From contig CAJFCJ010000001.1 in assembly GCA_904063045.1 (NCBI GenBank), positions 3,545,320 through 3,609,319 of the forward strand: 64,000 nucleotides of DNA, written 5' to 3'. Made by a program: the position numbers and the translations under genes. The DNA comes from Dimorphilus gyrociliatus. Lineage: Eukaryota; Animalia; Annelida. Under the pieces are notes generated by a model. It saw only the letters and a list, made by a program, of their open reading frames with translations, did not search any database and was not told where the DNA came from. This document shows, piece by piece, positions 1 to 61,736 of this stretch; the first letter of the stretch is position 1, and every line of letters begins with the position of its first letter.

Positions 1-852
1 AAGATAAACAACTAAAAATCAAATATCCCTTAAACCAACATAATTTCTTCTTCTCTTTCTCTTCCTTATCTATTTTAAGGCACGCTCCGCTACTCGAAAT
101 TTCCTCACTCGCTTCACTCCCACCAGAAGAACAGATTGCATATGATCGGTCATCAAGGTCAAAACGATTGCCTTCTACATCTCTATTTCTCTTTTTAATA
201 GTTCAATAAATTATTTTTATACAACAATTCTTTTTCTGTTATTCGTTCGTTCGCTCAGTTATTCATTCACTCACTCACTCACCAATTCATTCATTCATTC
301 ATTCAAACATTTATTTATTTTTAACTTTTATTTAAATTTCTTTCTCTCTCTCTCTCTCTTCGTTTCTTCCCTTCATTGAATTGTTTTCTTTATTAATCTT
401 TTACTTTTTCACACCTACTCTTTAACTAGTTAATAAAATCAAATTATTTCATCATTTTCATTTGCCGTTAAACCTCGATCATTAAGAAAAATAACCGCAA
501 CAATTACAAACCAATAGTCGATAATTGAATTAATTGATTATTAATAATCCCTAATCCGATTAAGATCGAATTCTTTTCAATTGGAAAAAAACACCGCTTT
601 CACAAAACCAACTCATACCCACCGCTCCTCTCTCTTAACCCTATCCAACCCCCTCCCCCCTAGAATAATCTTTATTTTTTCATTCAACGGCACCCCCTAG
701 TCAAACCGTTCAACCACAGACTATCGAGTAGAGTGCCCCTATCCTTTTCTCTCTTTCAGTTATCTCATTCCTTTTTCGCTGGAGTAGAAACCCCTCTTTT
801 TTTGGTGTCGATTCTGTAACGATATGCTTCTTTCTGTTTCAATTTAACAGCT

Positions 853-4039: not shown

Positions 4040-4079
<40 letters not shown>

Positions 4080-5046
4080 CAGCGACAGCGTATGAGTGAG
4101 TGAAAAAGAGAAGAAAAAGGAAGTTGAGAAAGAGTAAAAAGAATAAAGGAAGGAAAAAAGGCATTGATGATTAAATGAAGAAAAGACAAACGATTAAACA
4201 AACAGTCTTTTAATTAAACTGTTGGACGGCTTGAGAGAATTTCTAATTGGTCACAAGAAAGCTAAAAAAATCTATCTATGATGGGTAGGCAGGGAGATGG
4301 AACGGTAAACAAAGTGGGAAAAAATTGAATGAATGTGGCCGTTGAGATTAATAGAGTCTTATCTTGCTTGTCACGTGATTTGGACGGGCTAATTCCACTG
4401 CAAATCCAATCTAAATCCGTTGCAGATTTGCTGGCGGAAAAATATGCCATTTGCCAATGGGATAAATAAATTCTGAATATAAATAGGATTTTTTCCTTTA
4501 CTTTATCAAATTAAAATAAAACGTCTTAAAATTATTTTTAATACTTTTTTGTTTTGTCTCTTTTCTATCCGATTCCGCGTTCTATTTAGTTCTCTCCCGC
4601 CCTCACTCCCCCCACCCCTACCCTCTCTCTTACTTGTACGCAGTTCTTTTTTTTCTATTGCTCTTGGTGCAAGACGAATTGACGAATGATCGAGATGAAA
4701 GAGCCTGGGATAGATAGATGGAAGCAAGTAAGAGCGAAAGAAAGAGAAAGAGAGAAAGAGAGTGAGTAATAAATAGGCAGAACGGAAAGAAAGAAAGCGA
4801 GAGAAATAGGATTTCGGAAGAAACATCCTAGAAAAGGAGAGACAAGTGGTAGGTCTACAAAGAAAATGGGAAACAAAAATAGAATAAAGATTATCGTCTC
4901 AAAAATGTTACAAGCTAAAAATATCATCATTTTGTATTTTACTTTTCAATGTATTTAAAAAAATGGAAAAAAAAACAAACCAGATGCCAAAATCTAAATA
5001 TTGGATAAACTAGACACGAAAATAATAAATGAATTTAAATTCCTTT

Positions 5047-5048
5047 TC

Positions 5049-5106
<58 letters not shown>

Positions 5107-5121
5107 TCTCCCTCTCTCTCT
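5047..5121 (+). repeat. (CT)n microsatellite; representative of dozens of CT/AG tracts in the window
   Basis: Directly visible CT dinucleotide run with a few CC interruptions. Similar tracts at 4045-4078, 7591-7625, 28791-28820, 42813-42851 and elsewhere. Confidence 0.95.
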
Positions 5122-7588: not shown

Positions 7589-7628
<40 letters not shown>

Positions 7629-10600
7629 TTTATCTTTTCCTTCCTCCCACTCTTGTCCTTAGATAGAATATAATTATATCAATGAATCCTAATAATACAT
7701 TTTTTATATTGTATATATTAGAAAGGGAAGATTTATTTATACTATAGAAATGTAGATAGTATATAGTATATATATAAATATATATAGCTGTTACTATATA
7801 TGGAAATATATTAGGACAAAAAAAAAGTTTAAGAAAGAGATAACAGTTGTAACGTCGGTAATAACGGCAATAAAAGTAAGGATTTAATTAATCCCTCAAA
7901 CCCCGTTAACGACCATTTTTGTATCGAAAACCAACATTTTCTTTCTCTTTTACACTATTTCCCGCCATTTTAATCGATTAATTAGTATCATAAAACATTC
8001 GTAGTATTATATTAATTATTTATAAAAATATCATTATTATTCACTAAATATTCGTCTTTTACTGATCTATCATTCTTCTTATTTGTTTGTAGACCTATTA
8101 TCTATCTGTCCCTCTCTCTCTCTCTCTCTCTTTCTTTCTTTTCTCTGCCTCTTTCTCTCACTCTCTCCTTTCCTCCCCTTCTCTGCTCTCCTTCTCCGTG
8201 TCTCCGTGTCCTTCTTATCAGCTTTTCCCTCGTTATGATATCTGTACTAGTGTTTGTCGTTGGCAGCTTAATCGGTTTTTTAATCGTGTTTCGTAGTTTT
8301 GAAGGGATAGTTACTTTGTTTTAATTGAAAGGTAATGCAATGAATACAAATAAGAATAGAAGCATGTTAGTAAAATCAAACAAGAAAAGGCTTAAAAGAT
8401 GACAAAAAAATGTCGCCTTTCTCTTTTTCAACTTGTAGAGAATATCAGTAAAGACGTCTTAGGCTAATCACATGTTTTACGCGCCAGCGATCATCATAAA
8501 AGCGTCTTATGTTAGCTTTTGAGAGACGGAATCTATTTTCGATGATGTCGAATCGCCTGTTTGAAGATGGTTAATAGTGTGAATATAAAGTGCAAAAAAT
8601 CATAGGGAATAACATCCAATTGTCTCTTTTTTACATAATTTGCAGAAATGACCAGTTTTTTTATCTTTCTTTCTCTTTTTCCCATATTCCATTCCCGTTT
8701 TTTTCTCTACTTACTTTTGCAAAAAACATCTCATTTAAATATTCTACAAACTTATTGACATTAAGGTAAATAGAAAGAATTTCAACTGTAGCGTTGATCG
8801 TCTGCAGTGTAAGCGCAAGCTGATATACTGTATATATCGAAACTATATACGGTATATATATATACAATATATATACATTTGTAACTCCATTCATCGTTGG
8901 GCCGTCTCTTTTTCTGTCTCCCTGGCGCCTACTCGAGGACGAAATTTGCATCCGAAACAAATGAAAAAGCTCGAAGGCGAAGGAAAGAGGAAAAGAGAGT
9001 TTTTCATAACCATTTATATGGAAATTAATTGGTTGCGAAAAGCGAGTGTTTATAATACAGTAAGAGGGTATTTATGCAAATCACATTCCAGCATTTCAAT
9101 TATTTCAACTCCAACAAAACTTGACCAATTCTCCTAGTCTCTCTTTATTTCTTCAAACTTTTCTCTTCATTCTATTCAGTGCGCTTCTCCTTTTCTCTTG
9201 CATACTTACAATCATTCTTTTCTCTCCTTTCCTTTTTCATTTTGCCATTTTACTTTTCTCTCTTTTCTATTTCTCATTCCTTGCCTTTTCCCCCTCCCTC
9301 TCTCTCTATCTCTTATGAAAAAATGTCTTAAAAGTGTTAACTCTTCACGCTAGAGCATCTTCACAAGATGGATTATCGGTCAAGATTCGTTCCAGAGCCG
9401 ATTGGATGCAGATGAATTGGAAAATCTCTGATGTGTCATCGTTTGATCCTGAAGGGGTTAGAGACACGAAGGATAACGGGTTGGGTGGGCTTAAAGTGCA
9501 TGCAAAAGTAGGAGATTAACAGAAAGAAAGAAAGAGGCTCGGAAAAGAGAGAGAGAAGAGTGCTGGGGAGCAAAAGGGGAAGGAAGAGAAAAAGGAGAGA
9601 GATAATTGAAAGATAGCGTTATGAAAGTCCAATGCCAAATTGGACTGTTGGTGAAAAATTTCGTAATTGAACATAAAAGTCGAAGGAAACTGAGATAAAT
9701 GCTGATCATGATTGGTTTGAATAAGAAGAAACATATACAATGTATATAATTCCGTTGCGAGGAATTTCCTTTTAGCTTAATATACCCGGAATAAGACGCC
9801 TGCAGCTTAGCGAGGTCTATCACTGACCGGATATGAAGCTATTTTTGACGCTCTCTTTTAGACGAGAAAGAAGCGAAGGTTTAAAGCGTTGAAAAAGCGG
9901 CGCCCGAGAAGACAGCCGGCGTTTCCACTTCAAAGACTCCTATTTATGAAACCCCTCAAATAATGGCCTTAGAAATTCTTCCTTACTGGCTTAATCACAC
10001 TATTCAGGTGTCATTAGAGAATGGAAATATTATTAGTACTCGTCTCTGAATCATTCACGCAAGGTAAAGCCGATCCAAGTCAAGTCACACACAATCACTT
10101 AATCTGTTCCTTTCAGCCCATTTTTATTCAATCTGTATCAATCTATTAGAAAAAGAGAAAAGGGTTGTGCTGTGTTTGGTTGGCGTGGAGGGGGTTGGGG
10201 GGAGAAGGGGGGAGAAAGTGGAAATGGATGAAAAGTAAGGAAGAAGAAAATAAAAAAAGACTCAAGTTTTTGTAAAGAGATAAAAAAAAAGTTAAATAAA
10301 AAACTTTTGCTTATAAAAAAGAAAGAGAAAGTTTAGAGACTTAATTTGCTTCTTTCTTCTTAGTTATTCTTAATTTAAAAAACGTGATAAACACTAATCT
10401 TCTGTTTCTTATTTATCATTATTAAATCAAGAATTGGACGTATTAATCTCTCTCATCAGTTCCAGTCTTGCATTCATTTAAAGAAGCGATCAAACGATAA
10501 TTTTGCAATTGGAATTTCTGGAAAAACGAACGGTTTTGTTTCTGTTTTCTAGAAAGAATCGGCAGGGATTGGTACGGACGGACGGGGGAAGATATTAGCT

Positions 10601-20979: not shown

Positions 20980-21544
20980 TAAGGAAAGGAGAGAAATTAA
21001 TATAGTCTAAATATGGAAAGACAAAGAAAGGAAAAGAAGAAGACAAACAAACAAACTTTGAGATCAAATACAAACTTTTGATAAATTATTTTCTCTTTGT
21101 TTTGTGACCAAGTTTTCTTTTCTTTCTTTCCTTCTCTTCTCTCTTCTTATTTAAATAATTCAATTATACTTTAACTCGTCTATTAGCCTATCGATTCTCT
21201 TTGATAATTCAACAAAAACACAACTCGATTATACATTTATAACAAGCGTACTACTAGGCCTGTTAACCTAATTAATTAAATATATAGTATAAACCGTATT
21301 CGAGGTCGTCAATCTTATGAATATTCAAATTTTTTCAATCCAATCGTTAACTTTTTATTACCGCACCTTTTCATTCTACTTTAAATATTTTCTTTCTCAT
21401 TAATTTTCCAGGCGTCTCTTTTAAAATATAGATAAAACAAAAAAGTGACGCCTACAAAATCGATGAGTTTATGTATTGTTATCCTAGTCGCCATGATGAA
21501 CGACGCCATTATTTATTGAACATTTCATAGTGAACAATAAAATT

Positions 21545-23225
21545 ATGGACGCTGGTCCTGATGGATCGTCTTTGGAACGTTCTACCTCTTGGCAAAGTGG
21601 TATTAAACCCTTGGGTTCGTCCCAATCTATAAGATCTTTCTCTAAAGGTGGACGTATTTCCGCCCTGGCAACGCCTCCTCGTTCAAGAAGCGACAATCTT
21701 CAAAAGAACAATGCAAACAACACGGATAAATATCTTATTGGTCGCCCGGAAGCTGACGTCATATTTGTCAACGAGCTTGAAAAACAATATGAATGTGTAG
21801 CGTGTAATAAGGTATTGAGATACGCTGTTCAATTTAAAGCGTGCGAACATCGTTGCTGTTCCGCTTGTTTACCGCAATTGATGAAAGTTGAACCGAGATG
21901 TCCAATTGATCAGATCAAAATTGAAAAGCAGAATATCCGCGTCGATAAAACTTTTCAAAAGGAAGTAGACGCCCTAGAGATATTATGCTCTTTCAAGGAG
22001 AAGGGCTGCGAATGGGCCGGCTATCTGGGAGAATTGAACGTTCATCTCAGCGATTGTCTTTACAGAGTAATCAAATGTCCTATGGGTTGCGAGGTCGACC
22101 TCGAAAAGAGGTTTGTTGACAAACACGTCGAAGAGGATTGCGTAAAAAGATTGGTTCCATGCGAATATTGCCATGAGAATTTCATTTATGAAGAGGAGGA
22201 ATTGCATTTGGAAGATTGCCAGAAATTTCCAATTGAATGTCCAAACAAATGCGGTATATCGAAAATAGCAAAAGATGAAGTGAAGGTACACTTGGAGGAG
22301 GAATGCCCTAGACAGCTAACGGATTGTTTGTTCGTCCGGGCCGGATGCGAATATAAGGTAGGCTAAACGCTTTATTCTCTTTTCCTTTTAAATGTTTTTT
22401 TTAGAAGCCAATCGAAGCTTTGTCTTCTTCAGTAATAAGATAGATAGAGAGAGAGAGAGAAAGATAACCCTCCAAATAAGAATTTGTTTTTTTTCAGTGC
22501 GAAAGAAACGAAATGGATATACACATGAAAGAGAACTTTAAGGATCATCTCAAAATGGCCATTAGGAACATTACGGCGAATGATAAATCTTTGAGAATAT
22601 TCTCCAAATCTCTTCAAGCCCAAAATGAACGTGTTAACGTTGTTGAAGAACAGGTAGTGGGCCTTGAGAAACTATACGGTTCTCAACTCCTATGGAAAAT
22701 TGATAAGCATTCAGAGAAGATGGCCGAAGCTAAAAGTGGAAAGAAGCCTACTATCTATAGTCCAACTTTTCTTACGAACAGACACGGCTATAGACTGGCC
22801 CTGTCGTCTAGCCTTTATGGAGATGGTAAAGGTAATATAAATCAATTAAATATCCCAATAAGCGTTTGTACATGAATGATGTGTCTTTGTCAACAGCTAG
22901 AGGGCAGACGATGTCCTTGTACGTTTCAATTTGTAAGGGGGAATACGACGCTCTACTCAAGTGGCCTTTTACTCATAAGATAACATTTACTCTGATCGAT
23001 CAATGCGAAAACTTGAACGAGAGAAAGAATATAGATTATACGATAAAGCCGAATCTTTGTAAGGAGAACTTGTCGTTCCTATCAAAGCCGATAGGGGATA
23101 GAAACGCTTCGTTCGGAGCTCAGAAATTTATTGAATTGGACGTTTTAAAAACGAGAGATTACACAAAAAACGACTGTTTATACATAAAGGTTGCAGTCGA
23201 CAGCGAAGATATGCCACTCTTGTAA
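21545..23225 (+). CDS. TRAF: TNF receptor-associated factor (RING, TRAF zinc fingers, MATH): join(21545..22357,22498..22831,22897..23225), 491 aa; may extend 5'
   Basis: TRAF-type C3HC3D RING (CVAC...CEHRCCSAC...CPID); repeated zinc fingers (HLSDC...CPMGC...HVEEDC...CEYC...HLEDC...CPNKC...HLEEEC); MATH domain (LLWKID, YSPTF, GYRL, YDALLKWPF, FTLIDQ). Splices keep frame (total 1476 nt). Paralogue number not assigned. Confidence 0.92.
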
Positions 23226-50360: not shown

Positions 50361-52688
50361 TTATATGTCGACGTTTACGCCAAGTGAAACGCTCTGCAAT
50401 ACGCGGCAACTAGACAACAGATTACGTAGCCAGTTAGTTTGAGCTTCGGTGAAGTAACATTCCAAAACGCAAAGCGAAAGAAGAGAATTAGAAGACGAGA
50501 CTAGTCCGTCGCATATTTTCTCAAATCCATCTCTCATATTGTAATTATGACTTAAATAAACATCTTCCAAACAGCAACATTCCGTTAGAAAGTCGGCCAA
50601 GCAAACGCTATTCTCCTTAGTCAGACGACAATCGGAAAGGTTTAATTTCAATAGAGATTTCGAAGAGGATTTTAAACCATCAAACACTTTACTATAACAT
50701 TTTCCCAGTGAATAATTATAACTCGAATCAGCTTTTTTCAACCCTTTACACTCTTTCAAAAATTCACCAACACTGTTGAAATGCTCCTCAACTTTTAAAC
50801 TATTCTTAAAGCTAAATTTAACAAGCGAATTGGCCAATGAAGTCTGTCGGCTCAGTACTTTCCTAAAACCACTTCCGCTGCACATAAAATTATCAATATG
50901 CAGTATTCGTAATGAATTACATTCACTCAACAGGTTGCCTAGACAACAACACTGTTCATCGGTTAGTGAGCATTTGTTAAGTTTCAGTTTGAAAAGAGAA
51001 TTGGACGATGATTTCAATCCGAGGCATACTTTAACAAATCCATTACGAAATTTCTTACAATTTCCTAAATTAACACTTTCCAAGCGAGTGCATTCTTCTA
51101 AAAATTCGCCCAACCAATAACTTTCATCCTCCGTAAAGAGATTATAGCGAAAGTCTATTTTCAATAGAGAATTCGAAGACGACTTTAATCCGTTGCAGAT
51201 GTTCTTGAATCCGTGACATTTATTATTCCATATAATCGTTTTTAACGAATGGCATTCTTTCAAGAAATCTCCCATCCAAACGCTTTGTTCTTCGGTGAAT
51301 GCACAATTCTCCACGTGGATTGTTGATAGAGTGTTTGATGAAGATGTTAATCCGTTACAAATACTACTTAATCCATCATCGCAATTGCATAGATAATCTA
51401 TATTGATATCTTCCAGACGAGTGCACTTTTCCAGTAAATCGCCCAACGATACGCTTTGTTCTTTATTCAAATTCACTAAATAGACAGCAATTGTCGACAG
51501 GGAATTACAAGATGACTTTAACGCATCGCATATCGTAATAAATCCACTCTCACTGTTTGTTATATATACCAAATTAACGTTCTTTAACGAGTGGCATGCC
51601 TCCAGGAAATTCGCCAACCAAATGCTCTGCTCCTCCGTCAATTGACAACCGTACAAGTTGAGATTGAATAGAGAATTCGACGACGATTTTAATCCTTTAC
51701 ATATTTTCTCAAATCCACTTCCGGTGTTTGAATTGTAACATAGACTAATGTCTTGTATATTATTGCATTGTTGAAGTAAATCGCCTAGCCAGAAGCTTTG
51801 TTCCTCGTCTAGATTACAGAATGGAAGATGAATGCTGTGCAGAGATTTCCATGAGCATTTCAATCCGGAGCATATTCTCTCAAATCCTCTCCAACACTTT
51901 GAATTCGAGCTCAAATCAATTTCCTGTAGTGAATTGCATTCTTCTAATAAATCGCCCAAGTAGACGCTCTCCCTTTCAGTCAATCCGCAATTGTGAAGGT
52001 TAACCTTTGATAGATATTTCGAAGATGATTTTAATCCGTCGCATATCTTCTGAAACGAATCTCCCCAACAATTTCCGCTAAAACTCAAATCAAACTCTTG
52101 TAAACTGGTACACTTTTCTAGAAACTCTCCTATTATAAAGCCTTCCTCCTCCGTCAAATCACACCTTGTTATTGAGATACTAGAAAGAGAATTCAAAGAT
52201 GCCTTTGGCTCGGAGAGGTTTACTTTAAAGATAATACCAGCATTGGTGATTTTCTCAAACGTTAAACTCTTTAAATGGGGACAATCCAGCAGTTGTTCAC
52301 CTAGAGAAAGATATTCGAAATCTTGTAGATTGCAATATTTCAAGTGTAGATGTTCAAGTGTATATAACGTTGGCAAGTTGAAAATGGAACTAAACGCGTA
52401 CAGCGTCAAACTCTTAATTGGATGATTAGTTAGGAAAGCTAAATCTTTTGCTTTTCCGTATTTCGCTCCTTTTAAAGAGACTGAGCTTAACGATACAATG
52501 TCATTTGTGAAAAAATTCAATTCGTTCACCGTAAACGGTTCATCAAAACTATTGGCGAATTCGAATATTTGTGTACCGATTAGGCTGGGTATGATAATAG
52601 AGTTTTCTCTACAAATCCTACTTAGCAGGTGTAAATTGTCTGTAATAACTCTTGTCGACAAAATTCCCAATGTTGAAACAACAACCAT
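50361..52688 (-). CDS. Intronless LRR protein 1 (775 aa): N-terminal BC-box/Cul2-box-like motif plus RI-type alternating ~28-aa LRRs
   Basis: Repeats of CxSLQEIDLSxN..GFxKICxGLKSS / SxSLxxINLxxCxLTEEQSxWLGDxL. N-terminus STLGILSTRVI...IIIPSLIGTQIF. No Walker A/NACHT. Confidence 0.9.
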   Translation of the reverse strand: MVVVSTLGILSTRVITDNLHLLSRICRENSIIIPSLIGTQIFEFANSFDEPFTVNELNFFTNDIVSLSSVSLKGAKYGKAKDLAFLTNHPIKSLTLYAFSSIFNLPTLYTLEHLHLKYCNLQDFEYLSLGEQLLDCPHLKSLTFEKITNAGIIFKVNLSEPKASLNSLSSISITRCDLTEEEGFIIGEFLEKCTSLQEFDLSFSGNCWGDSFQKICDGLKSSSKYLSKVNLHNCGLTERESVYLGDLLEECNSLQEIDLSSNSKCWRGFERICSGLKCSWKSLHSIHLPFCNLDEEQSFWLGDLLQQCNNIQDISLCYNSNTGSGFEKICKGLKSSSNSLFNLNLYGCQLTEEQSIWLANFLEACHSLKNVNLVYITNSESGFITICDALKSSCNSLSTIAVYLVNLNKEQSVSLGDLLEKCTRLEDINIDYLCNCDDGLSSICNGLTSSSNTLSTIHVENCAFTEEQSVWMGDFLKECHSLKTIIWNNKCHGFKNICNGLKSSSNSLLKIDFRYNLFTEDESYWLGEFLEECTRLESVNLGNCKKFRNGFVKVCLGLKSSSNSLFKLKLNKCSLTDEQCCCLGNLLSECNSLRILHIDNFMCSGSGFRKVLSRQTSLANSLVKFSFKNSLKVEEHFNSVGEFLKECKGLKKADSSYNYSLGKCYSKVFDGLKSSSKSLLKLNLSDCRLTKENSVCLADFLTECCCLEDVYLSHNYNMRDGFEKICDGLVSSSNSLLSLCVLECYFTEAQTNWLRNLLSSCRVLQSVSLGVNVDI

Positions 52689-53350
52689 TTTTTCCTGTCG
52701 CGTTTATCCTGAAAAATAATGAATACTTGAATTTTTATGTTTCCTTCTTAAATAGAAATTAAAGTTGCCATTAATCGAAAAAAAAATAACAACCAACGAA
52801 AGTAGCGATTTTATACTTTTTAAATTTTCATCTCTTAACTTTTCTTTTAAATTTCACTCTAGAAATTTTGATCTTCACTGCTTCAATACGAAACAATAGA
52901 GAATCTCAACAAATTATACATTAATTACTCGTTTATGCGTTGATCTGTTGAGTAAGCACGATTTGTTAATTTATTGGCAAAACACTCGCCATGTCACCTT
53001 TTGAGGTAAAAACCGGGTACTCGGTAAGGAGCCGGCAGGTTGCACAATTTAGCAAATAGAAAATTATTTATGAATCTCAAACTTGAATAACAAAAAACCA
53101 CTTATAAAGAATTTTGAGTTTTATTCAAATTAACAAAAATATCCACTTTTTCGGGTCAGGTTGACACTTTTTTTATAATAAAGATTTTTAGCAAAAATTG
53201 AACAATTTTGTCAAAATGTGATTCTTTAAAGTTTGTTTAAATTAAAACAAAGATAGTTTTGGCTTCAAATAAAGTCGGACAATCAAAGAAAATAGAAAGA
53301 AAACTTTTTCAACTATGAAGTAAAGTGATCAGTAAGAGAGACAGGGAGAT

Positions 53351-53354
<4 letters not shown>

Positions 53355-53389
<35 letters not shown>
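53355..53389 (+). repeat. (CA)n microsatellite between divergent LRR genes 1 and 2
   Basis: Directly visible run. Confidence 0.95.
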
Positions 53390-53393
<4 letters not shown>

Positions 53394-53856
53394 TACATAC
53401 ATAGAGTAAATCAATCAGCTGTACTCTAACCTTGGACACTGCATCTCTTCAGTGGAAGACATTTTGACAAGACATTAGGATGTAAATAAAAGAAATGCAT
53501 ATCTCTGCCATCATTTTAAGCCTATCTTGTTTATTTAAGGGAAATTACAATCAGCTTATAAACTTTTGTTACTGCTAGCAAGGATTTATTTATTTTTTAC
53601 AGCTTAAATCGTTATAATAGAGGAAAATAAATGCAATCTTATGATACGCTCTATTTCGTAATAATCACAAGATAACAACACTTTTTCGTGTGAAAAAAAA
53701 AGAAAAGGATTATTATACATCTTGAAGGAGAAAACATTAAAATTACCTATCCGTGACATGTTTTCCAATTGAAGGCGAAACATTAGAAACATAAAACTCC
53801 TTTCTGTTTGTCAAGATGTAGTTTGTCTGCTCTTTTTTGAAGAGAGTTGAAGAGAA

Positions 53857-55305
53857 ATGCCAATTAAAACATTGAAATATCTGTCAATAAATTTCATTAG
53901 GAATTATTTATATTTAATGAGCGAAATATGCAAAAGAAATTGTTTATTTCTACCTCATTCTGTTGGTTTGGAAATTTTTGACTATGCTAATAAAGACAAC
54001 CATCCATTCTCCATCTATGAATTGAAATTCTTCTCTTCCGACATTCTAAAGCTAACTGCCGCCGCATTAAAGCAAGAAAAGTTTAAGATGGTTAACAATT
54101 TGAGTTTTCTAAATAGTCATCCAATTCAATATCTATCGCTAACTGGATTTTCATCAATATTAAACTTACACTTTAATTATAATACAATTGATTTCTTGGA
54201 ATTAATAAACTGCAATCTTGGACTGGAGGAATCTGTAAAATTAGGCCAACAATTGTCAAATTGTCACCATTTGAAATCAATAAAATTGGAGAAAAGTAAT
54301 AATGCAGGAAATATTTTTCAAAAGAGTTTACCAGGAAAAAGGTTAATGAAAATCAGAATTTGCAATTGTGATTTGACAGAGGAACAAAATCATTTTCTTG
54401 GTCGTTTCTTGAAAGATTGCCACTCCTTACAAGAAATTGATGTCAGCTATAACGGAAAGAGTGGAAACGAATTGAAGCCTATCTGTAATGGATTAGAATC
54501 CTCTTCGAATAGCATTTTAAAAATCAATTTGGCTGGTTGTTCTCTAAATGAATTGACCAGTGGATTGTTGGGAGATTTCCTCCAACAGTGCAATTCATTA
54601 AGGACAATTGATCTTAGCTTTAATTATCTCTGCGGACAGGGATTTCAGAAAATCTGCCAAGGATTGAAATCATCCTCCAAATCGCTCTCGGAAATGAACA
54701 TTTACGAATGCTCTCTAACCGTTCAACAGAGCTGTTGGCTAGGTAATCTTTTAAGAGAATGCACTTCGTTGCAAATTATCGATTTCAGTTGCAATGACAC
54801 TTGCGGAAAAAGTTTACAAAGTATATGCGAAGGATTAAAGTCATCTTCGACAACTCTTACGAAAATCGACTTTAGCGGATGTTTCCTGTCTGACGAACAA
54901 AGCTACTGGTTGGGAGATTTTTTGGAAGAGTGTAACTCCCTTAAGGAAATTGATCTAAGCTTTAACTCTAACTGTAGAATTGGCTTTAAAAAAATATGCC
55001 ACGGTTTAAAATCATCGGCGAATACTCTTTTGAAAATCACTTTAGACGGCTGTTGTTTGACGGATGAGCAAAGCTATTGGTTGGCAAGCTTTCTTCAATA
55101 CTGCAATTCATTGCAAGAGATTGATCTCAGTTTCAATTCCAATTACGGAAATGCAATTAAAAATATATGTAACGGCTTAAAAACATCTATAAACTCTCTC
55201 TCAAAGTTAACTTTAGACGGATGCGATTTGACTGATGAACAAACCGACTGTCTAGATCAATTTCTCAAAGATTGCATTTCATTAAAAGAATTCTATTTCA
55301 CTTGA
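53857..55305 (+). CDS. Intronless LRR protein 2 (482 aa), same family
   Basis: N-terminus KTLKYLSINFI...LFLPHSVGLEIF; the same paired ~28-aa repeats (GLKSSS..L.EI....C.L...QS.WLG.FL..C.SL..ID.S.N). Confidence 0.9.
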   Translation: MPIKTLKYLSINFIRNYLYLMSEICKRNCLFLPHSVGLEIFDYANKDNHPFSIYELKFFSSDILKLTAAALKQEKFKMVNNLSFLNSHPIQYLSLTGFSSILNLHFNYNTIDFLELINCNLGLEESVKLGQQLSNCHHLKSIKLEKSNNAGNIFQKSLPGKRLMKIRICNCDLTEEQNHFLGRFLKDCHSLQEIDVSYNGKSGNELKPICNGLESSSNSILKINLAGCSLNELTSGLLGDFLQQCNSLRTIDLSFNYLCGQGFQKICQGLKSSSKSLSEMNIYECSLTVQQSCWLGNLLRECTSLQIIDFSCNDTCGKSLQSICEGLKSSSTTLTKIDFSGCFLSDEQSYWLGDFLEECNSLKEIDLSFNSNCRIGFKKICHGLKSSANTLLKITLDGCCLTDEQSYWLASFLQYCNSLQEIDLSFNSNYGNAIKNICNGLKTSINSLSKLTLDGCDLTDEQTDCLDQFLKDCISLKEFYFT

Positions 55306-55802
55306 AAAATCTGATAACAATAATAAAAATTCACAAGAATTTGCATAATACTTCCGAGAAATTTCACCTTTTTTCGCCAATCGTGTCCTATCCAACAACC
55401 CAACAACTCTGGGAGAGATAGGATTCTAATGACCCGTCTTCGTGGGTAGTATTCTCTATCGTAGGCATAGAAACATTTCCAACAATTTACAATGTTCTCG
55501 TAGGCGAATTATTTCATTCTGATGTCTATAGCCTTGGCGCTTGGTGCTCTGTTCTTCCATTCGCCCAACTAGTAAATGTTTCGGGGCTGACGTGTTCTAT
55601 TCTGCAGACATTTTCCAATTATCACACTCGTCTACGGGCTATTTGGTTTTTTTCGGATTATTCGGACCTGCAGGTAGGGCAGTGAGTTAATAGACGCTTT
55701 CCGTTTTGTGCACTCGAAAGATCAGTCAGTCTGGCAGTTGAAGAGAAAAAGAACGATGCTTTACAACGACAGCAACATAGTTAATATCGCATTATTGGCA
55801 AC

Positions 55803-57299
55803 TCAAAAACTACAACGTCTGCCTAAATATAAATCACAATAGTCTCTTTGCTCTTTTGTTAAATCACATTCAAAGAGACCAAGATCCTTGAGAGAATTTG
55901 ACGATGATTTTAATCCATCTATAATTTTCATAAATCCCTGCTGAAGATGTTTATTTCCGTAGAGAGCAACAATCTCTAATGAATTACATTCCTTAAGAAA
56001 ATCACCTAAAAAACAACCTTGCTCCTCCGATAGTTTACATTGCCAAAATTCTAGTAATGAAAGTGATTTTGACGAAGATTTTAATCCATCGCAAATTGAT
56101 CTAAATCCCTCTCCGCATTGGTCATTCTCACCAAAACCAAAATACTCTAGTGAATTGCACTCTTTCAAAGCGTCTCCCAACCAAAAACTTTGTTCTTGAT
56201 TTATATTACAACAGCCTATAGTAATTTCCAAAAGAGATTTTGACGATGATTTTAATCCTTCGCAAATTGCTTTGAAACCTTTACGGCAGTTTTCATTCCT
56301 ACTTAAACTGGCCTTTTGTAATGAATTACACTGCTTCAGAAAATCACCGAACCAAAAACTCTGCTCTTCATTCAATTTACAATTGCTAAAGTCAACTTCC
56401 GATAGTGAGTGTGACGACGATTTTAATCCTTCGCATACATCTTTAAACCCCTTCCCCCAAGAATCGTTCGACCATAAAATTGCTCTATCCAACGAATTGC
56501 ATTCTCTTAAAAAATCTCCCAGCCAATGGCTTTGTTCCTCGTTGAACTGACAGCCACCGAGGATCACTTCCACTAGTGATTTAGCCGAAGATCTCAATCC
56601 TACGAAGATACCTTTAAGACTATTTCCGCAACGACTATTTAAACTTAAATTGACTTTCCTTAATAATTTACATTCCTTTAGTAGATCAGCTAACGATAGA
56701 CTTTGCTGTTCAGTGAGATTACAATTGGAAAAGCTCATTTCAAGAAGCGATTTTGATGAGAAGGATAATCTATAACATAATTCTCCAAATCCGTTAACAT
56801 CGTTGCCGCCGTCGACGGGTGGATTCTGATTTATTGAACTAAAGACGCTTCGCCTAAAATTGACAGTTTTTAGCAAAGTACAATTCGACAATTGTTTGAT
56901 TAGAAGATTAAATTCATCGTAATTATGATAGCAATTGCAGAAGAATAATTGAAATTTATCCAGCGACGTCGGCAAGTACAAATTGGGAAATGAATGAAAG
57001 TCCATTAACGTCAAACTTTTCAAAGGATGACCTCTAAGAAAACTTAAATTGTAGTCGTCTTCTTTAAAGAATCGTCGTTTTACGAGAAGACTTGTAAATT
57101 GAAAAATGTCGGATGAAAAAAATTCTAGTTCCTTTGTTGAAAGTTTATAATTATTTTCAATAATAAATTCAAAAACTGACAAGCCCAACAATTCGGGTAG
57201 AATATATCCGCTTTGTCTATAAATTTGACTAATTACATGTAAATTTTCGACCACTGTACTTAATGCGAAATTTTTCAATTTTATAATAAACATAGTCAT
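55803..57299 (-). CDS. Intronless LRR protein 3 (about 496-498 aa; ATG at 57299 or 57293), same family
   Basis: N-terminus MFIIKLKNFALSTV...YILPELLGLSVF; paired LRRs with GLKSSS(K/H)SL and EEQSFWLGD motifs. Confidence 0.9.
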   Translation of the reverse strand: MTMFIIKLKNFALSTVVENLHVISQIYRQSGYILPELLGLSVFEFIIENNYKLSTKELEFFSSDIFQFTSLLVKRRFFKEDDYNLSFLRGHPLKSLTLMDFHSFPNLYLPTSLDKFQLFFCNCYHNYDEFNLLIKQLSNCTLLKTVNFRRSVFSSINQNPPVDGGNDVNGFGELCYRLSFSSKSLLEMSFSNCNLTEQQSLSLADLLKECKLLRKVNLSLNSRCGNSLKGIFVGLRSSAKSLVEVILGGCQFNEEQSHWLGDFLRECNSLDRAILWSNDSWGKGFKDVCEGLKSSSHSLSEVDFSNCKLNEEQSFWFGDFLKQCNSLQKASLSRNENCRKGFKAICEGLKSSSKSLLEITIGCCNINQEQSFWLGDALKECNSLEYFGFGENDQCGEGFRSICDGLKSSSKSLSLLEFWQCKLSEEQGCFLGDFLKECNSLEIVALYGNKHLQQGFMKIIDGLKSSSNSLKDLGLFECDLTKEQRDYCDLYLGRRCSF

Positions 57300-57574
57300 T
57301 GAGAAATATGAAGAAATTCTCACGAAGTGAAACGCCTCAGTCTGCTATGGAAACTACAACTGGTTGAAAAATTGAGGAGCGCTTTTAGGTTGCAAATAAT
57401 TTATATATTCACAATTTTTTTCCGTTCAGCCTACCTTTTTTTATGCTTTCAATAATGGAAACTCTGAAAGCCGGATATTTTTTCTAGTTCTATTAATAGA
57501 TTGTCGTTTGTTCGATCTCTTATTCCAAGAACAAGACTTAAGTCGTCGTCGTTGTTTGTTTGTTTATTGATTAA

Positions 57575-59581
57575 TTAAAAGAATATTTGGCTTGTGTTTT
57601 TGTAGAAAGGACATAATTTGGTTAAATTTTCTATTAAAATAGTTTGTCTCTCACTTAAATGACAATTGTTAAAATTAATTTTGTTTAGGGAATTTAACGA
57701 AGACTTTAACCCTTCAAGTATTCTCTCGAATGCCTTTCCGTATCTTGTATTATTCGATAAGTTTATCTCTTGCAATGATGAGCACTTTTCAAACAAATCT
57801 CCCAAACAGTAAGCTTCTTCTTCGTTCAAGTCGCAATCGCTAAAGCTTATGTTTAAAAGCGTTTGCGAAGAGGTTGATAATCCGTCGAATATCTTCTCGA
57901 ATCCTTCTCCGCTCACTCTACTCTTCGTCATATAGAATTCTCCCAACCAAATACAATCTTTCAATAGAGCACCCAACCGGAAACCCGTTTTTTTGTTCAG
58001 TTTACACCCTGAAAGACAGATCTTTGACAATGAACGACACGAAGTGCCAAGTCCCGCGAAGAGTTTCTCAAATCCTCTTTCGGCGCATGCGCTAGAAATA
58101 AATTGAATTTCTCGAAGAGAAGTGCACTGTTCTAATAGATCACCCAAAGCAACAGTCTCCCCATCGTTGAAAGAATATTCGTCATTGTTGATTTTTAAAA
58201 GATTGCCCGAAGACGACTTTAAACCGTGAATTATTCTTCCGATTCCCTTTTTTCCGTGCTTATTATCCGTAAAGAATTTCATTTGTCGAATTGAATTGCA
58301 GCCTTTGAGAAAATCACCCAACAGACAACACTCTCCCTCAGACAATTGACATTTAATATTTATCTCTAAAAGGGAATTTGAAGATGATTTCAATCCTTTC
58401 AAGATCTTTTCCAATCCATTTTTTTGGATATCATTCTCGTTCAAGCGAATCTCTTCCAATCGCCTACAATCTTTTAATAAATTGCCTAATTTGGCACTTG
58501 ATCTTTCACTTAAACTCAACTTACCGAGCTCAAGTTTTATTAGGCAATCCGACGATGATTTTAACCCATCGAATATCCACTCTAACCCCTTTACGTAGTT
58601 GTCGGCGCCTTGAAAATGGATTTCTCTTAATGAATTACACCGTTTGAATAAGTCACCCAGCGAATATCCCTCCTCTTCGGTTAGACTAACGTTTACAAGG
58701 GCAATCTTGAAAAGAGAGGCTGAGGAGGATTGTAGGGCGATAAAGATTTTCTTTTTCAACTCGTGACCGTAACCACCGAGCGAGCACAAGTAGATTTGTC
58801 TTAACGAAGAGCATTGCGCTAAAAAGTCCCCTAACCAAATGCACACCTTTTCGTTTAGCTGAAGAGATAGTTTAACGTTTAGGAGATGTTCCACTGAAGA
58901 TTTCAATCCGTCGAATGTCTTCTTCAGTCCTTCTCTACATTTAGTGTCAAAGCTCAAATCTATTTCTTGCATCATAGTACACTGTTTGAGTAAATCGCCT
59001 AAAGAGGACGACTGTATTCCAGTCAGGGAACAGTCGATCACTTCGATTTTTACTAGACAATTTGACGAAGATTTCAATCCTTCGCAAATCTCTTGAAATC
59101 CTTTTTGCCAAGTTGCCGAATTTAAACACTTCAGATGATTTACAGTTTCTTCCAGCCGTATCACCTTTATCCAACAACAATTCGACAACAATCTTCCCAA
59201 ATAGTTGATATCCGACGACTGAAGATTGCAATTAATCATTTCGAAATTTTCCAGCAAAGGTGAAAGATGTAGTTTATTAATTTGATGATAGTTTGTTAAC
59301 GATAAGGATTTAACTGGATGATTCCTTAAAAATCCACCATTCAATCCTTCTGCTAAGTCTTTATTCTTCATCTTAACCGACGTTAATTGCATTATATTCG
59401 AAGAGAAAAAGTTCATATCGTTCAAACAGTAGTTGTACTGATCGTTACAAATATAACTAAAAATTTCCATACCAAGCGAATGAGGTATAAGCAAACAGTT
59501 CTTTTTACAAACTTCACTCATCAGACGTAAGCTTCTCACGACAAATCTAAGCGACAACTCTTTCAACTTTTCAACGTACAT
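57575..59581 (-). CDS. Intronless LRR protein 4 (668 aa), same family
   Basis: N-terminus MYVEKLKELSLRFV...LLIPHSLGMEIF; paired LRRs, more divergent than those of copies 1-3. Confidence 0.9.
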   Translation of the reverse strand: MYVEKLKELSLRFVVRSLRLMSEVCKKNCLLIPHSLGMEIFSYICNDQYNYCLNDMNFFSSNIMQLTSVKMKNKDLAEGLNGGFLRNHPVKSLSLTNYHQINKLHLSPLLENFEMINCNLQSSDINYLGRLLSNCCWIKVIRLEETVNHLKCLNSATWQKGFQEICEGLKSSSNCLVKIEVIDCSLTGIQSSSLGDLLKQCTMMQEIDLSFDTKCREGLKKTFDGLKSSVEHLLNVKLSLQLNEKVCIWLGDFLAQCSSLRQIYLCSLGGYGHELKKKIFIALQSSSASLFKIALVNVSLTEEEGYSLGDLFKRCNSLREIHFQGADNYVKGLEWIFDGLKSSSDCLIKLELGKLSLSERSSAKLGNLLKDCRRLEEIRLNENDIQKNGLEKILKGLKSSSNSLLEINIKCQLSEGECCLLGDFLKGCNSIRQMKFFTDNKHGKKGIGRIIHGLKSSSGNLLKINNDEYSFNDGETVALGDLLEQCTSLREIQFISSACAERGFEKLFAGLGTSCRSLSKICLSGCKLNKKTGFRLGALLKDCIWLGEFYMTKSRVSGEGFEKIFDGLSTSSQTLLNISFSDCDLNEEEAYCLGDLFEKCSSLQEINLSNNTRYGKAFERILEGLKSSLNSLNKINFNNCHLSERQTILIENLTKLCPFYKNTSQIFF

Positions 59582-60279: not shown

Positions 60280-60480
60280 CAAAATTCTGAAGATATACTT
60301 TGCAATAAATCACTCAGTTACAGAGTCTGCTTTTCATCTAGATAGCGAATGCGATGATGAATTAGCCAATCGGCTACACACTTTTCGATTTGTACATCCA
60401 ATAGAAAAGCATTCCTTTTTCGTTCAAACTACACAGACTACTTCCAAGAGATACAAGTTGATTTTCAACAGAGAAATCAT
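60280..60480 (-). pseudogene. Probable decayed fragment of a fifth LRR-family copy
   Basis: Minus-strand pieces in shifting frames match the family repeat: SLLKINL (60474-60454), CSLNEK (60433-60416), KVCSRLANSSSHSL (60384-60343), LDEKQTL*LSDLLQ (60341-60300, stop where family members have W). Confidence 0.45.
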
Positions 60481-60734
60481 CTTGAACAACACCTTCAAAC
60501 TGGTCCATAACGTCATCTTCATAATCACTATCTTAGGTGGTGAACGAATAGTCTCGAACTGCAATCTACTGCAAAAGGGGGGAAGTAAAAATTGAGAGAA
60601 AAGCTCACGTAAAAAAAGAGAACGTTGAAAATTTATTAGAGTATCAAGTTCTAAATATTTTAGCAAGAGAAAATTTGTTAAAAGAGACAACATCGAAAAC
60701 GAGAGGTAGGAAAGGAAAGAAGGAAGAGAAGAAA

Positions 60735-61736
60735 TTATTCTTCATCCTTCTGTTCGTGATCAACTTTGATAACTACGTTGCCCTTCTTATGTCCTCCTTC
60801 GACGTAGATATGAGCTTGAGGTATTTCTTCAAGTGAATAGCATCTGTCAATAACTGGTACGACTTTTCCAGACTCGGCAAGTTCTCTCATCAAATCGTAA
60901 TATTCAAGTACTGCGCCGGCTACTGAGCAAATGACTTTTGGTCCTCCGACAACTTTACGCCACAACATTTGGCAAATTTCGTACATGGCAAACACGGCCA
61001 TAAGAAAATAGCCATTCGACTGTAGAGAATATTTACAAGACGAGTAGCTCTTTTTGCCAACTGTTTCAAAGATAATATCGTATCTGACCCCATTTTCAGT
61101 AAAATCTTCCTTCGTATAATCGATAACGTAGTCGGCTCCCAAAGATTTCACCATTTCCATATTGGTTGTACTACAAACGCCAGTTACTTCGGCACCGTAA
61201 TGTTTCGCCAATTGAACTGCAGCCGTTCCAACCGCTCCAGAAGCACCGTAGATGAGTACTTTTTGACCCTTTTCAATATTTGCCTTTCTCAGGAAATGTA
61301 TTGCAGTTTCAAGACCGAAAGGAATCGATACAGTCTCCTCGTGGCTAAGATTTTCAGGTTTTTTCGATATGCACGCAGTCTCTGGCAGGCACTTGTATTG
61401 GGCGTAAGTTCCAAAACCAAATTCGGTCGAACCGTACACTTGGTCGCCCTCTTTAAACAATTTCACATCCTTACCGATCTGTTCAATTTCACCTGAAAAC
61501 AATAAACCCCAAATAGGTTGTCGCGGCGATCTTAAGCCAAACATAAGTCTGCTAGGAAGCCAAAAAGACGGCGGAATACCCCGAAAACCTCGAAGTTTAC
61601 AATCTCCAGATGTGACAACTGTCGCTAGTATTTTAATCAAGACTTCATTGGCCTTCGGAATCGGTTTTGGAATGGTTTTCAATTCAAATACACGGTCGGC
61701 TGGCCCGTAGCCATTGCACGTCATTGCCTTCATCAT
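60735..61736 (-). CDS. Intronless NAD(P)-dependent MDR-superfamily oxidoreductase (zinc-free, quinone-reductase-like), bacterial-type (333 aa)
   Basis: YGP...E.K.IPKP.PKANEVLIKI.AT.VTSGDC; GDQVYG; FGTYAQYKCLPE; KKPENLS.EE..SIPFG; dinucleotide-binding IYGASGAVGTAAVQLAK; SLGADYVIDYTKEDF; C-terminal GHKKGNVVI. The catalytic and structural Zn-ligand Cys pattern of true ADHs is absent. Confidence 0.9.
   Translation of the reverse strand: MMKAMTCNGYGPADRVFELKTIPKPIPKANEVLIKILATVVTSGDCKLRGFRGIPPSFWLPSRLMFGLRSPRQPIWGLLFSGEIEQIGKDVKLFKEGDQVYGSTEFGFGTYAQYKCLPETACISKKPENLSHEETVSIPFGLETAIHFLRKANIEKGQKVLIYGASGAVGTAAVQLAKHYGAEVTGVCSTTNMEMVKSLGADYVIDYTKEDFTENGVRYDIIFETVGKKSYSSCKYSLQSNGYFLMAVFAMYEICQMLWRKVVGGPKVICSVAGAVLEYYDLMRELAESGKVVPVIDRCYSLEEIPQAHIYVEGGHKKGNVVIKVDHEQKDEE

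Follow-up and report, generated by a model that had tools for sequence, protein, structure and literature searches.

Four intronless leucine-rich repeat genes with a VHL-box-like N-terminal module in the annelid Dimorphilus gyrociliatus: candidate substrate receptors of a Cullin-2 ubiquitin ligase

Four uninterrupted, intronless ORFs for leucine-rich repeat (LRR) proteins that resemble immune sensors lie side by side, on strands -, +, - and -, in the window, the whole stretch of 64,000 nucleotides of DNA of Dimorphilus gyrociliatus, a tiny marine worm, that was analysed. They are four independent, intact genes (g1-g4) of a lineage-specific protein family of this annelid. The first 45 residues resemble the EloBC/Cul2 docking module, and the proteins are therefore probably lineage-specific degradation receptors. 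The reading that the family consists of CRL2 (EloBC/Cul2) E3 substrate receptors, built like ZYG11B or PRAME, is somewhat favoured by sequence comparison. The E3 link, which we hold with moderate confidence, is well motivated yet unproven, because there was no significant match, the fold searches were unspecific and no Pfam VHL, SOCS or F-box hit was obtained.

Organization of the gene cluster

The original observation of four intronless ORFs, in this orientation, was confirmed at the following coordinates.

50361-52688, minus strand: g1 coding sequence, intronless, 775 aa (= P0003), with the N-domain ahead of about 10 RI-type LRR super-repeats of 57 aa
52548-52688, minus strand: g1 VHL-box-like three-helix module, aa 1-47, with BC-box-like TLGILSTRVI (52644-52673) and Cul2-box-like IPSLIGTQI (52566-52592)
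52689-53856, no strand: divergent g1-g2 spacer, with both presumed promoters and a (CA)n microsatellite
53857-55305, plus strand: g2 coding sequence, intronless, 482 aa, with the N-domain ahead of about 5-6 LRR super-repeats
53857-53997, plus strand: g2 VHL-box-like module, aa 1-47, with BC-box-like TLKYLSINFI (53869-53898) and Cul2-box-like LPHSVGLEI (53950-53976)
55803-57299, minus strand: g3 coding sequence, intronless, 498 aa counted from the ATG at 57299, with the N-domain ahead of about 5-6 LRR super-repeats
57159-57299, minus strand: g3 VHL-box-like module, with KLKNFALSTV (57252-57281) and LPELLGLSV (57174-57200)
57575-59581, minus strand: g4 coding sequence, intronless, 668 aa, with the N-domain ahead of about 9 LRR super-repeats
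59441-59581, minus strand: g4 VHL-box-like module, with KLKELSLRFV (59540-59569) and IPHSLGMEI (59462-59488)

A six-frame HMM scan of the window located the N-domain once at the beginning of each of the four ORFs and nowhere else, and the g1-g2 spacer has no coding exon of the family. In-frame stop codons are found 3-20 codons upstream of the ATG in all four genes. Under translation table 11 the g3 ORF (55803-57323) starts with the GTG at 57323, the first ATG being at 57299. The spacers of the cluster are 250-1170 bp long and its neighbours, an MDR oxidoreductase, a P450 and a 501-aa gene, are unrelated to the family. The contigs of the public run X1 (the kind of run is not on record) are collinear over each gene, have no joints and end in the spacers; a separate 212-nt contig of this run covers 52816-53027 in the g1-g2 spacer. 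The public annotation has wrong models for three of the four genes. The g2 model (P0001, 405 aa) lacks the N-domain and begins only at Met78, while the g4 model (DgyrCDS890, 973 aa) joins residues 1-624 of g4 to g3.

The LRR arrays are built of regular 57-aa (28 + 29) RI-type super-repeats, and their number varies between the genes as had been noted (about 10, 5-6, 5-6 and 9 in g1 to g4). A domain search found neither NACHT, the absence of which had also been noted, nor any further domain in the four ORFs. Identity among the four copies is 33-44% over the first 160 aa; all four are intact and no pseudogenes of the family are present in the window. The copies are old paralogues, and they give no sign in the window of the suggested birth-and-death dynamics.

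The N-terminal module and the wider family

All eight motif strings on which the ligase reading was first based are present. The first motif starts at residue 6 in g1 (TLGILSTRVI), 5 in g2 (TLKYLSINFI), 7 in g3 (KLKNFALSTV) and 5 in g4 (KLKELSLRFV), and is followed further downstream by IIPSLIGTQIF, FLPHSVGLEIF, ILPELLGLSVF and LIPHSLGMEIF, respectively. The gap between the motifs, given earlier as about 15 residues, is 17 residues from the end of the first motif and 27 from start to start in all four proteins. Box position 1 is Lys in g3 and g4, as had been noted for two copies. In the AF2 model of g2 residues 1-200 (pLDDT 95.8) there are three helices (6-16, 18-27 and 34-46) followed by the LRR, with the first LRR strand at 68-72. 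The three helices and LRR of this model agree with the VHL box described as 'three alpha-helix' (PMC5216831), and at the sequence level the N-terminus fits the VHL box at all defined positions.

Agreement among the copies in the window is due to common descent, so that conservation across the wider family is the informative test. With the N-terminal 100 aa as query, an exhaustive HMM search gave 78 hits at E<=1e-3, about 75 of which are real; the shared 100-aa N-domain defines the family. These roughly 75 representative proteins are D. gyrociliatus paralogues, on at least 7 contigs, and proteins from one animal study, which supports a lineage-restricted and multi-copy family, in line with the repertoire proposed originally. 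Almost all of them, across several assemblies, have the N-domain from about residue 1 onwards.

In an alignment of 77 family sequences, the BC-box positions are Leu at L6 (76/76), C/S/A at position 10 (66/77) and I/V at position 14 (73/77). In the Cul2 box, I/L/V is found at positions 32 (75/77), 36 (72/77) and 40 (77/77), and Pro at P33 in 74 of the 77 sequences. L6 and P33 are two of the three most conserved columns, while box position 1 is S/T in just 41/76. The family pattern is identical to the BC-box and Cul2-box consensus in the literature (PMC4878042; PMC5216831). Of 75 family N-termini, 56 contain the composite motif, against 3 of the 544 other 60-aa windows taken from these proteins and 57 of 15,000 shuffles matched in composition.

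Helix 1 carries the BC-box pattern (S/T/K)-L-x-x-x-(C/S/A)-x-x-x-(I/V). In the proposed mechanism its invariant Leu and small C/S/A residue would dock on Elongin C, and the Pro-bearing helix 3, with the Cul2-box pattern hydrophobic-P-x-x-hydrophobic-x-x-x-hydrophobic, would contact the N-terminus of Cullin-2. The three-helix module of about 47 residues is predicted to be joined directly to a ribonuclease-inhibitor/NLR-type LRR horseshoe, which varies in length. The concave face of the latter, the beta-strand and loop sites of which are the most variable positions, may bind the substrate, which would then be ubiquitinated by Rbx1-bound E2. The analysis shows the integrity of the genes, their family membership, the conservation pattern, the predicted fold and the shared LRR cassette; binding to EloBC/Cul2, ubiquitination and any role in defence are what we infer beyond these.

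Database searches and alternative explanations

Profile searches against 177,635 PDB sequences gave no statistically significant match to any VHL-box or SOCS-box protein. ZYG11B was one of seven matches (E=0.55) and Rad7, from the Rad7-Elc1 crystal, one of three matches to the 47-column profile (E=3), both non-significant. Similarity to VHL-box or SOCS-box profiles was not found; Pfam VHL, SOCS_box and F-box had zero hits across 77 N-termini at E<=10, and there was no precomputed PRAME_N hit on P0002 or P0003. In the fold search, the ten best of 48,161 PDB chains include Rad7-Elc1, FBXL2, FBXL17 and TIR1, but at Z about 11-14 the adaptor-binding receptors are level with RanGAP, NLRP3 and other generic LRRs, and ZYG11B ranked only 33 with Foldseek. 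The ESM Atlas shape search placed a PRAME family cluster at the top (TM 0.73), although rows of generic LRRs score as high (TM 0.70-0.75). On the predicted structures the LRR part dominates these searches, which do not separate the family proteins from generic LRRs. The proposed adaptor role in CRL2 is partly supported, by box pattern, conservation, architecture and weak in-register PDB hits, but not by significant VHL or SOCS homology.

The missing homology also agrees with N-terminal helices that merely cap the LRR solenoid and have no link to a cullin ligase, a reading that we consider rather unlikely. On this reading the family proteins would act on their own as LRR binders or inhibitors, comparable to ribonuclease inhibitor, RanGAP-type or NLR-decoy proteins, and the likeness to the boxes would be a coincidence of amphipathic helices in Leu/Ile-rich proteins. 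RanGAP1 is the best structural match (Z 14.4, model 1..200), the model is highly confident without a partner, box position 1 is weakly conserved, and an LRR N-cap with a buried core could by itself account for the conserved hydrophobic residues. However, all seven defined consensus positions are satisfied and are the best-conserved columns, and shuffled sequences and the remaining parts of these proteins carry the motif about 100 times less often. The only PDB matches that are neither spurious nor generic are two Elongin-C-binding LRR proteins, with functional residues in register, and PRAME and ZYG11B match the family in architecture and spacing. Conserved positions 6, 9, 10, 11, 14, 17 and 18 of helix 1 cover about 200 degrees of a helical wheel, probably more than a single packing face requires.

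An F-box-like or otherwise divergent adaptor-docking helix cluster, acting with Skp1/Cul1, or with EloBC and Cul5 or Cul3 as in Rad7, rather than Cul2, is improbable. FBXL2-SKP1 (Z 12.1), TIR1-ASK1 and Skp2 are among the top structural matches, as is FBXL17-SKP1 (Z 11.9-12.0), with model 1..200 on chain 319..527, which begins at the F-box; a rotifer LRR cluster named 'F-box domain' has TM 0.70 in the ESM Atlas. The 'IPxxIGxxIF' motif of the family is similar to the start of an F-box. Nevertheless, the Pfam F-box found nothing in the 77 N-termini at E<=10, helix 1 lacks a Leu-Pro start, and the Pro motif lies on helix 3 with just a 5-residue helix before the first LRR strand, so that F-box helices 2 and 3 are absent. 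The Cul5 box is LPxP, and the single Pro in hydrophobic-P-xx-hydrophobic-xxx-hydrophobic suits the Cul2 box instead; for another cullin speaks that Rad7 acts with Cul3 (PMC4551923). Least credible by far is that NLR or TRIM-LRR genes, with heads spliced on from upstream, have these ORFs as their terminal exons or decayed remnants, although the LRR arrays of the ORFs are close kin of those in TRIM-like and NACHT proteins of the same genome, the annotation splices g4 onto g3, and 20 nt before the g1 ATG there is an acceptor-like 'tttttcag'. A stop in g1 sits between this acceptor-like site and the ATG, and the in-frame stops before every ATG rule out NACHT-coding extensions, there being no NACHT ORF nearby. 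The spacers hold no family or NACHT coding sequence, the neighbours are unrelated, the X1 contigs have no joints, and the N-domain starts at about residue 1 in nearly the whole family. The view that these are not truncated NLRs therefore stands.

Comparison with known systems

The NLR and TRIM-LRR proteins of D. gyrociliatus share the RI/NLR-type LRR cassette of the family, and the LRR proteins closest to the family, among those that do not belong to it, have TRIM-like E3 heads or NACHT. The g1 array matches TRIM-like P0093 (6e-113) and P0094 (2e-95) and the NACHT protein DgyrCDS11741 (6e-43). Their heads differ, being RING/B-box/coiled coil or NACHT, and were not matched by the N-domain HMM.

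Yeast Rad7, a SOCS/BC-box LRR protein on Elc1 (Elongin C; PDB 5zb2), likewise has a BC-box helix directly before the LRR domain. Rad7 'SVSSLQSLCITKISENIS' aligned with the family consensus 'svksLkdlcLekIclNLy' (E=3), placing L6/C10 on L168/C172, the residues changed in the Rad7 SOCS-box mutant, which kills the Rad7 E3. The structural match (Z 11.8) covers model 17..200, with helix 1 outside the alignment. Unlike the family, Rad7 lacks a Cul2 box, is extended by a long N-terminal stretch and acts with Cul3 and Rad16 in DNA repair.

ZYG11B/ZER1, CRL2 substrate receptors of the ZYG-11 family, show the same order of BC-box helix, Cul2-box helix and LRR domain. In ZYG11B, L18/C22 contact Elongin C and F50/P51/V54 contact CUL2, with a spacing of 33 (bioRxiv 10.1101/2024.06.24.600508). 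Residues 42-113 align in register with the family profile, with I32/P33/I36 on F50/P51/V54, in a weak match (E=0.55), and L18/C22 correspond by pattern to L6/C10. ZYG11B differs in LRR type and in a C-terminal ARM domain that reads Gly/N-degrons, whereas the worm proteins have RI/NLR-type 57-aa super-repeats only and an inter-box loop 6 residues shorter.

PRAME, of a family of mammalian CRL2 receptors, has its BC box at aa 25-34 and its Cul2 box at aa 48-56, a spacing of 23 (PMC3418287), and the family value of 27 lies between PRAME and ZYG11B. PRAME LRRs are irregular, with a fixed length of about 500 aa, while the worm repeats are regular and variable in number, and there is no link at the sequence level. 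Both families are multi-copy and lineage-specific, with the two boxes right at the N-terminus and an RI-like LRR horseshoe behind them, and PRAME clusters in the ESM Atlas match residues 1-200 (TM 0.73, a second cluster 0.71). Since the taxa are unrelated, convergence is as likely as homology.

Genes of the cluster and their surroundings

The four paralogous genes g1-g4 are situated on contig CAJFCJ010000001.1 (3.6 Mb) of Dimorphilus gyrociliatus GCA_904063045.1, and each encodes a common N-terminal domain of 100 amino acids (N-domain) followed by leucine-rich repeats (LRRs). The ORF listing of the window confirmed the four reading frames of the original prediction, all without interruption.

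Genes of the cluster and the stretch that is mis-modelled in the public annotation (window coordinates)
50361-52688, minus strand, g1: uninterrupted ORF, 775 aa
53857-55305, plus strand, g2: uninterrupted ORF, 482 aa
55803-57323, minus strand, g3: uninterrupted ORF; 498 aa from the first ATG at 57299
57575-59581, minus strand, g4: uninterrupted ORF, 668 aa
55803-59581 and 53857-55305: mis-modelled stretch, equal to 3108-6886 and 7384-8601 of the DNA piece L003

The genes and the family they represent are almost certainly real. A six-frame HMM scan of the 64-kb window found exactly four copies of the N-domain; all of them open their ORFs, and pseudogene copies were absent. In the public annotation the full ORF is given for g1 alone, and the other three have wrong models. 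DgyrCDS890 (973 aa) is a fusion of g4 residues 1-624 to g3 from 'RSVFSSINQ', in which the last part of g4, the spacer of 250 bp and the entire g3 N-domain are spliced out. The public model of g2 (405 aa) begins at Met78 and lacks the N-domain.

Animal genes surround the cluster: a rhodopsin-type GPCR, FAM124, a RING/TRAF gene and an MDR oxidoreductase. The last is an intronless, zinc-type gene (ADH_N/ADH_zinc_N) at 60735-61736 on the minus strand, directly upstream of g4. The RING/TRAF gene is an ORF at 21530-22366 on the plus strand that combines a RING finger with zinc fingers of the TRAF type (zf-TRAF, 3.5e-18); it is another gene of ubiquitin or innate-immunity type in the window. Scanning the cluster against Rfam and for tRNAs gave nothing above threshold. 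At 60449-60533 on the minus strand, between g4 and the oxidoreductase gene, the C/D-box snoRNA family Z221/R21b scored 26.3 bits (E=0.046), below its gathering score of 44.

The genes had been proposed not to be truncated NLRs, and this agrees with the gene structure. An in-frame stop is found 3-20 codons upstream of the ATG in each of g1-g4. Pfam gives LRR fragments alone in the four proteins, with no NACHT as had been stated, and NACHT is also absent from the neighbouring ORFs. The spacers between the genes (250-1170 bp) contain no coding sequence of the family or of NACHT. The order that defines the NLR class, a NACHT N-terminal to the LRRs, is not found in g1-g4. An acceptor-like 'tttttcag' followed by G precedes the g1 ATG by 20 nt (52689-52710), and since a TAA separates the two, the g1 protein could not be lengthened by an exon farther upstream. 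It could be the acceptor of a 5'-UTR intron or a trans-splice site.

One public run only, X1, has contigs over the locus, and one of these ends right at the acceptor-like site (52708). The contigs span g1, g2 together with g3 (convergent) and g4 collinearly and without joints; they end in three promoter spacers, break between g3 and g4 and vary 2.6-fold in depth. This pattern argues against the fusion of g4 to g3. X1 looks like a transcriptome, and is weak evidence of expression because the kind of run is not recorded. A separate X1 contig of 212 nt (52816-53027, depth 43) within the divergent g1/g2 spacer has no Rfam or tRNA match; it may represent a transcript, either promoter-associated or small and non-coding, or a mere assembly fragment. 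The same spacer contains a (CA)n microsatellite at 53355-53392.

Conservation of the BC-box and Cul2-box patterns

A profile built on residues 1-100 of the g1-g4 proteins was used to collect the family in an exhaustive search of 1.84 billion representative proteins. The search gave 78 matches at E<=1e-3, of which three were spurious; in nearly all of the others the match starts at residue 1-5 of a protein of 250-970 aa. Column statistics were computed on an N-domain alignment of 77 sequences, and positions below refer to its columns.

The consensus of the BC box is (S,T,P)LXXX(C,S,A)XXX-hydrophobic (PMC4878042) and that of the Cul2 box, located C-terminal to it, hydrophobic-PXX-hydrophobic-XXX-hydrophobic (PMC4878042, PMC5216831). 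Both are recognized in the first ~47 residues of the N-domain, the BC box at columns 5, 6, 10 and 14 and the Cul2 box in all four of g1-g4. L6 is conserved in 76/76 sequences and P33 in 74/77, and these are two of the three best-conserved columns in the entire N-domain. Position 10 is Cys in 40 sequences, Ser in 20 and Ala in 6 (C/S/A in 66/77), and position 14 is Ile or Val in 73/77. Around the proline, Ile, Leu or Val is found at position 32 in 75/77, at position 36 in 72/77 and at position 40 in 77/77. The sole loose position is the first of the BC box (column 5), with Ser or Thr in 41/76 and Lys in 15. As already noted in the original prediction, the lysine copies in the cluster are g3 and g4; g1 and g2 fit the strict BC-box pattern. 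The family consensus 'sLxxLCLxxI' is nearer to the canonical BC box than the copies in g1-g4.

The motif strings originally quoted are all present in the four proteins. The distance given, about 15 residues, was incorrect: the second motif begins 27 residues past the start of the first. This start-to-start spacing is between that of PRAME, 23, where the BC box comprises aa 25-34 and the Cul2 box aa 48-56 (PMC3418287), and that of ZYG11B, 33. As in the family proteins, the boxes of PRAME and ZYG11B run straight into the LRRs. When both boxes were combined in a composite motif, with position 1 left free, it was found in 56/75 of the family N-termini, compared with 3/544 of the 60-aa segments elsewhere in these proteins and 57/15,000 shuffles.

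The predicted structure agrees with this arrangement. An AlphaFold2 model of g2 residues 1-200 based on a 74-sequence alignment (mean pLDDT 95.8, pTM 0.89) has predicted helices at 6-16, 18-27 and 34-46 and LRR strands from residue 68, and VHL boxes have been described as a three-alpha-helix arrangement (PMC5216831). A single-sequence model of g2, with pLDDT below 50 in the N-terminus, was set aside.

Relation to known substrate receptors

Searches of the PDB with profiles of 4 sequences, 77 sequences and 47 columns gave no significant match. A 105-column profile searched against the whole PDB had seven matches at E<=10, and one of these is ZYG11B in full length (9bid_A, E=0.55, not significant). 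In this alignment, which extends over family positions 24-96, I32-P33-x-x-I36 falls on F50-P51-x-x-V54 (chain numbering offset by 4); F50, P51 and V54 are reported CUL2 contacts (bioRxiv 10.1101/2024.06.24.600508). The 47-column profile gave three matches, one of which is Rad7 of the Rad7-Elc1 crystal (5zb2_A, E=3, not significant). Its 'SVSSLQSLCITKISENIS' aligns to helix 1 of the family with L6 and C10 on L168 and C172, the two residues changed in the Rad7 SOCS-box mutant (PMC4551923). These alignments are regarded as moderate support, because ZYG11 had been named beforehand, because they are in register with functional residues and because Elongin-C binders make up a tiny fraction of the PDB.

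Pfam gave LRR matches or noise only for g1-g4 and for all 77 N-termini, and no known VHL box in Pfam matched any of the latter. LRR_Zer-1 has no match in the g1-g4 proteins; it matches one distant family member, P0075, faintly (E=0.03). Bridging to ZYG11 through short members of ZYG11-like appearance (P0033, P0056, P0066, P0075 and P0069) reached generic LRR proteins only. Membership in the ZYG11/ZER1 family, characterized by a VHL box, ZER1-type LRRs and C-terminal ARM repeats, was rejected; in contrast to those proteins, the present ones end in ribonuclease-inhibitor-type LRRs without an ARM region. Membership in the PRAME/LRRC14 family was likewise rejected, as PRAME_N and PRAME_C are absent from the precomputed Pfam matches of the proteins P0002 and P0003 (the latter being g1), which comprise LRR_TMOD-LMOD and a faint LRR_4 only, and the similarity is one of shape (TM 0.73). 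Because the defining profiles and domains of both families are missing, the proteins are placed outside them, as putative VHL-box LRR receptors akin to ZYG11B, PRAME and LRR-1.

The fold searches do not discriminate because the LRR part dominates. Foldseek against the PDB had NLRP LRRs on top; FBXL2-SKP1 and ZYG11B-EloBC came in at ranks 32 and 33. VIA on 48,161 chains gave RanGAP1 (Z 14.4) and a tie at Z 11-12 of FBXL2-SKP1, FBXL17-SKP1, Rad7-Elc1, TIR1-ASK1, NLRP3 and axonemal LRR proteins, and VIA on the list from Foldseek was likewise dominated by the LRR part. A shape search of the ESM Atlas placed a PRAME cluster first (TM 0.73) and another at TM 0.71, with generic LRR clusters at 0.70-0.75. 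A language-model feature search with residues 1-100 gave Zer-1-like, LRRC41, FBXL15 and PRAME_C clusters at 0.82-0.84, which is the chance range, and these are leads only.

Complexes of FBXL proteins with SKP1 are among the structural matches; an F-box of FBXL type that docks Skp1 is an unlikely alternative for the N-domain. The F-box is a motif of ~45 aa starting with LPxE, with three helices binding Skp1, and is detectable by PF00646 and PF12937. None of the 77 N-termini gave an F-box match at E<=10. Helix 1 of the N-domain is without the Leu-Pro start of an F-box; the proline motif is instead on helix 3, which leaves no room for two more F-box helices before the LRRs, and the structural likeness to FBXL2, FBXL17 and Skp2 is no higher than that to generic LRRs. 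The Cul5 box has the sequence LPxP, and the single proline of the family fits the Cul2 box and not this one.

The N-domain is best explained as a docking module of VHL-box type, and probably is one, judged from motif conservation, architecture and the weak matches in register. The original reading of g1-g4 as VHL-box receptors of Elongin-BC/Cul2 ligases is partly supported by these three points, and significant homology to known VHL-box proteins was not found. EloB, EloC and Cul2 are generally present in animals, and their presence in D. gyrociliatus is assumed.

The wider family and its LRR arrays

All named members of the family are from D. gyrociliatus, where they are entered as 'unnamed protein product' and are found on at least seven contigs. 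The remaining members are from Logan assemblies of SRR23372215, SRR23372216 and SRR23372229, where members of ~600 aa are encoded in same-strand tandem arrays adjoining animal genes. One contig of SRR23372229 (L001, 9.6 kb) has four such members head-to-tail on one strand with spacers of 300-670 bp; its genome is that of an AT-rich animal, and the two other runs, from the same study, carry further copies. HMMER found the N-domain in no further named species among the 1.84 billion representative proteins, and a homologue search by word index, with the N-terminus of g2 as the query, matched only the window's own gene model. As far as HMMER reaches, the family thus appears to be lineage-restricted. 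P0069 (DgyrCDS10781, 649 aa, on a 1.02-Mb contig) has the N-domain twice, at residues 1-100 and ~330-430, each copy followed by a different LRR type of ZYG11-like appearance; a fusion of tandem genes or a further merge by the annotation could explain this.

The birth-and-death dynamics originally suggested for the family are not evident in g1-g4. Over the N-terminal 160 aa the four proteins share 33-44% identity; every copy is intact, and pseudogenes are absent. At this identity the synonymous sites are saturated. A role in defence is speculation.

The C-terminal parts consist of regular super-repeats of 57 residues (28+29) of the ribonuclease-inhibitor type, with ~10 units in g1, 5-6 in g2, 5-6 in g3 and ~9 in g4. 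The framework of the unit (L14, S17, C46, L21 and L49) is nearly invariant. Variability is highest at positions 25, 27, 28 and 30, followed by 53, 55 and 56 and continuing through positions 1-5 of the unit that follows. They correspond to the x positions of both beta-strands and to the loops behind these strands, the usual ligand face. Family paralogues are closest to the g1 array, followed by the RING/B-box/coiled-coil (TRIM-like) proteins P0093 (6e-113) and P0094 (2e-95) of D. gyrociliatus, then by the NACHT protein DgyrCDS11741 (6e-43) and fish NLRP3-like proteins. The TRIM-like and NACHT proteins with arrays nearest to that of g1 outside the family (P0093, P0094 and P0096) are encoded on other D. 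gyrociliatus contigs. Because TRIM-like and NACHT proteins follow directly after the paralogues, D. gyrociliatus has one LRR cassette on three heads. By analogy, an E3-recruiting N-domain would fit this pattern, since one of the alternative heads is a recognized E3 module.

Should the N-domain be no more than a cap, what is left is an ordinary lineage-specific LRR family. If it docks Elongin BC/Cul2, the proteins would be a previously unrecognized, expanded family of cullin-ligase substrate receptors, in which the target-binding part is the same LRR horseshoe as in NLR immune sensors. Docking would also give a testable case of one recognition scaffold re-used with different effector heads in animals, and a compact, intronless and easily expressed set of proteins for the rules of BC and Cul2 boxes. 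It would add one more type of receptor to the few that have a VHL box (VHL, LRR-1, FEM1, PRAME and ZYG11).

A broader and rather unlikely proposal is that Dimorphilus and at least one related animal have a modular system of intracellular recognition. One fast-diversifying LRR cassette of NLR type would be combined with any of three heads, the VHL box of the present family docking to CRL2, a TRIM RING/B-box/coiled-coil E3 or a NACHT oligomeriser, and a large share of the 'immune-like' LRR repertoire would act by direct ubiquitination of the bound target rather than by signalling. Such a system would be an invertebrate counterpart, based on cullin ligases, of degradative immunity in the style of TRIM5 and TRIM21.
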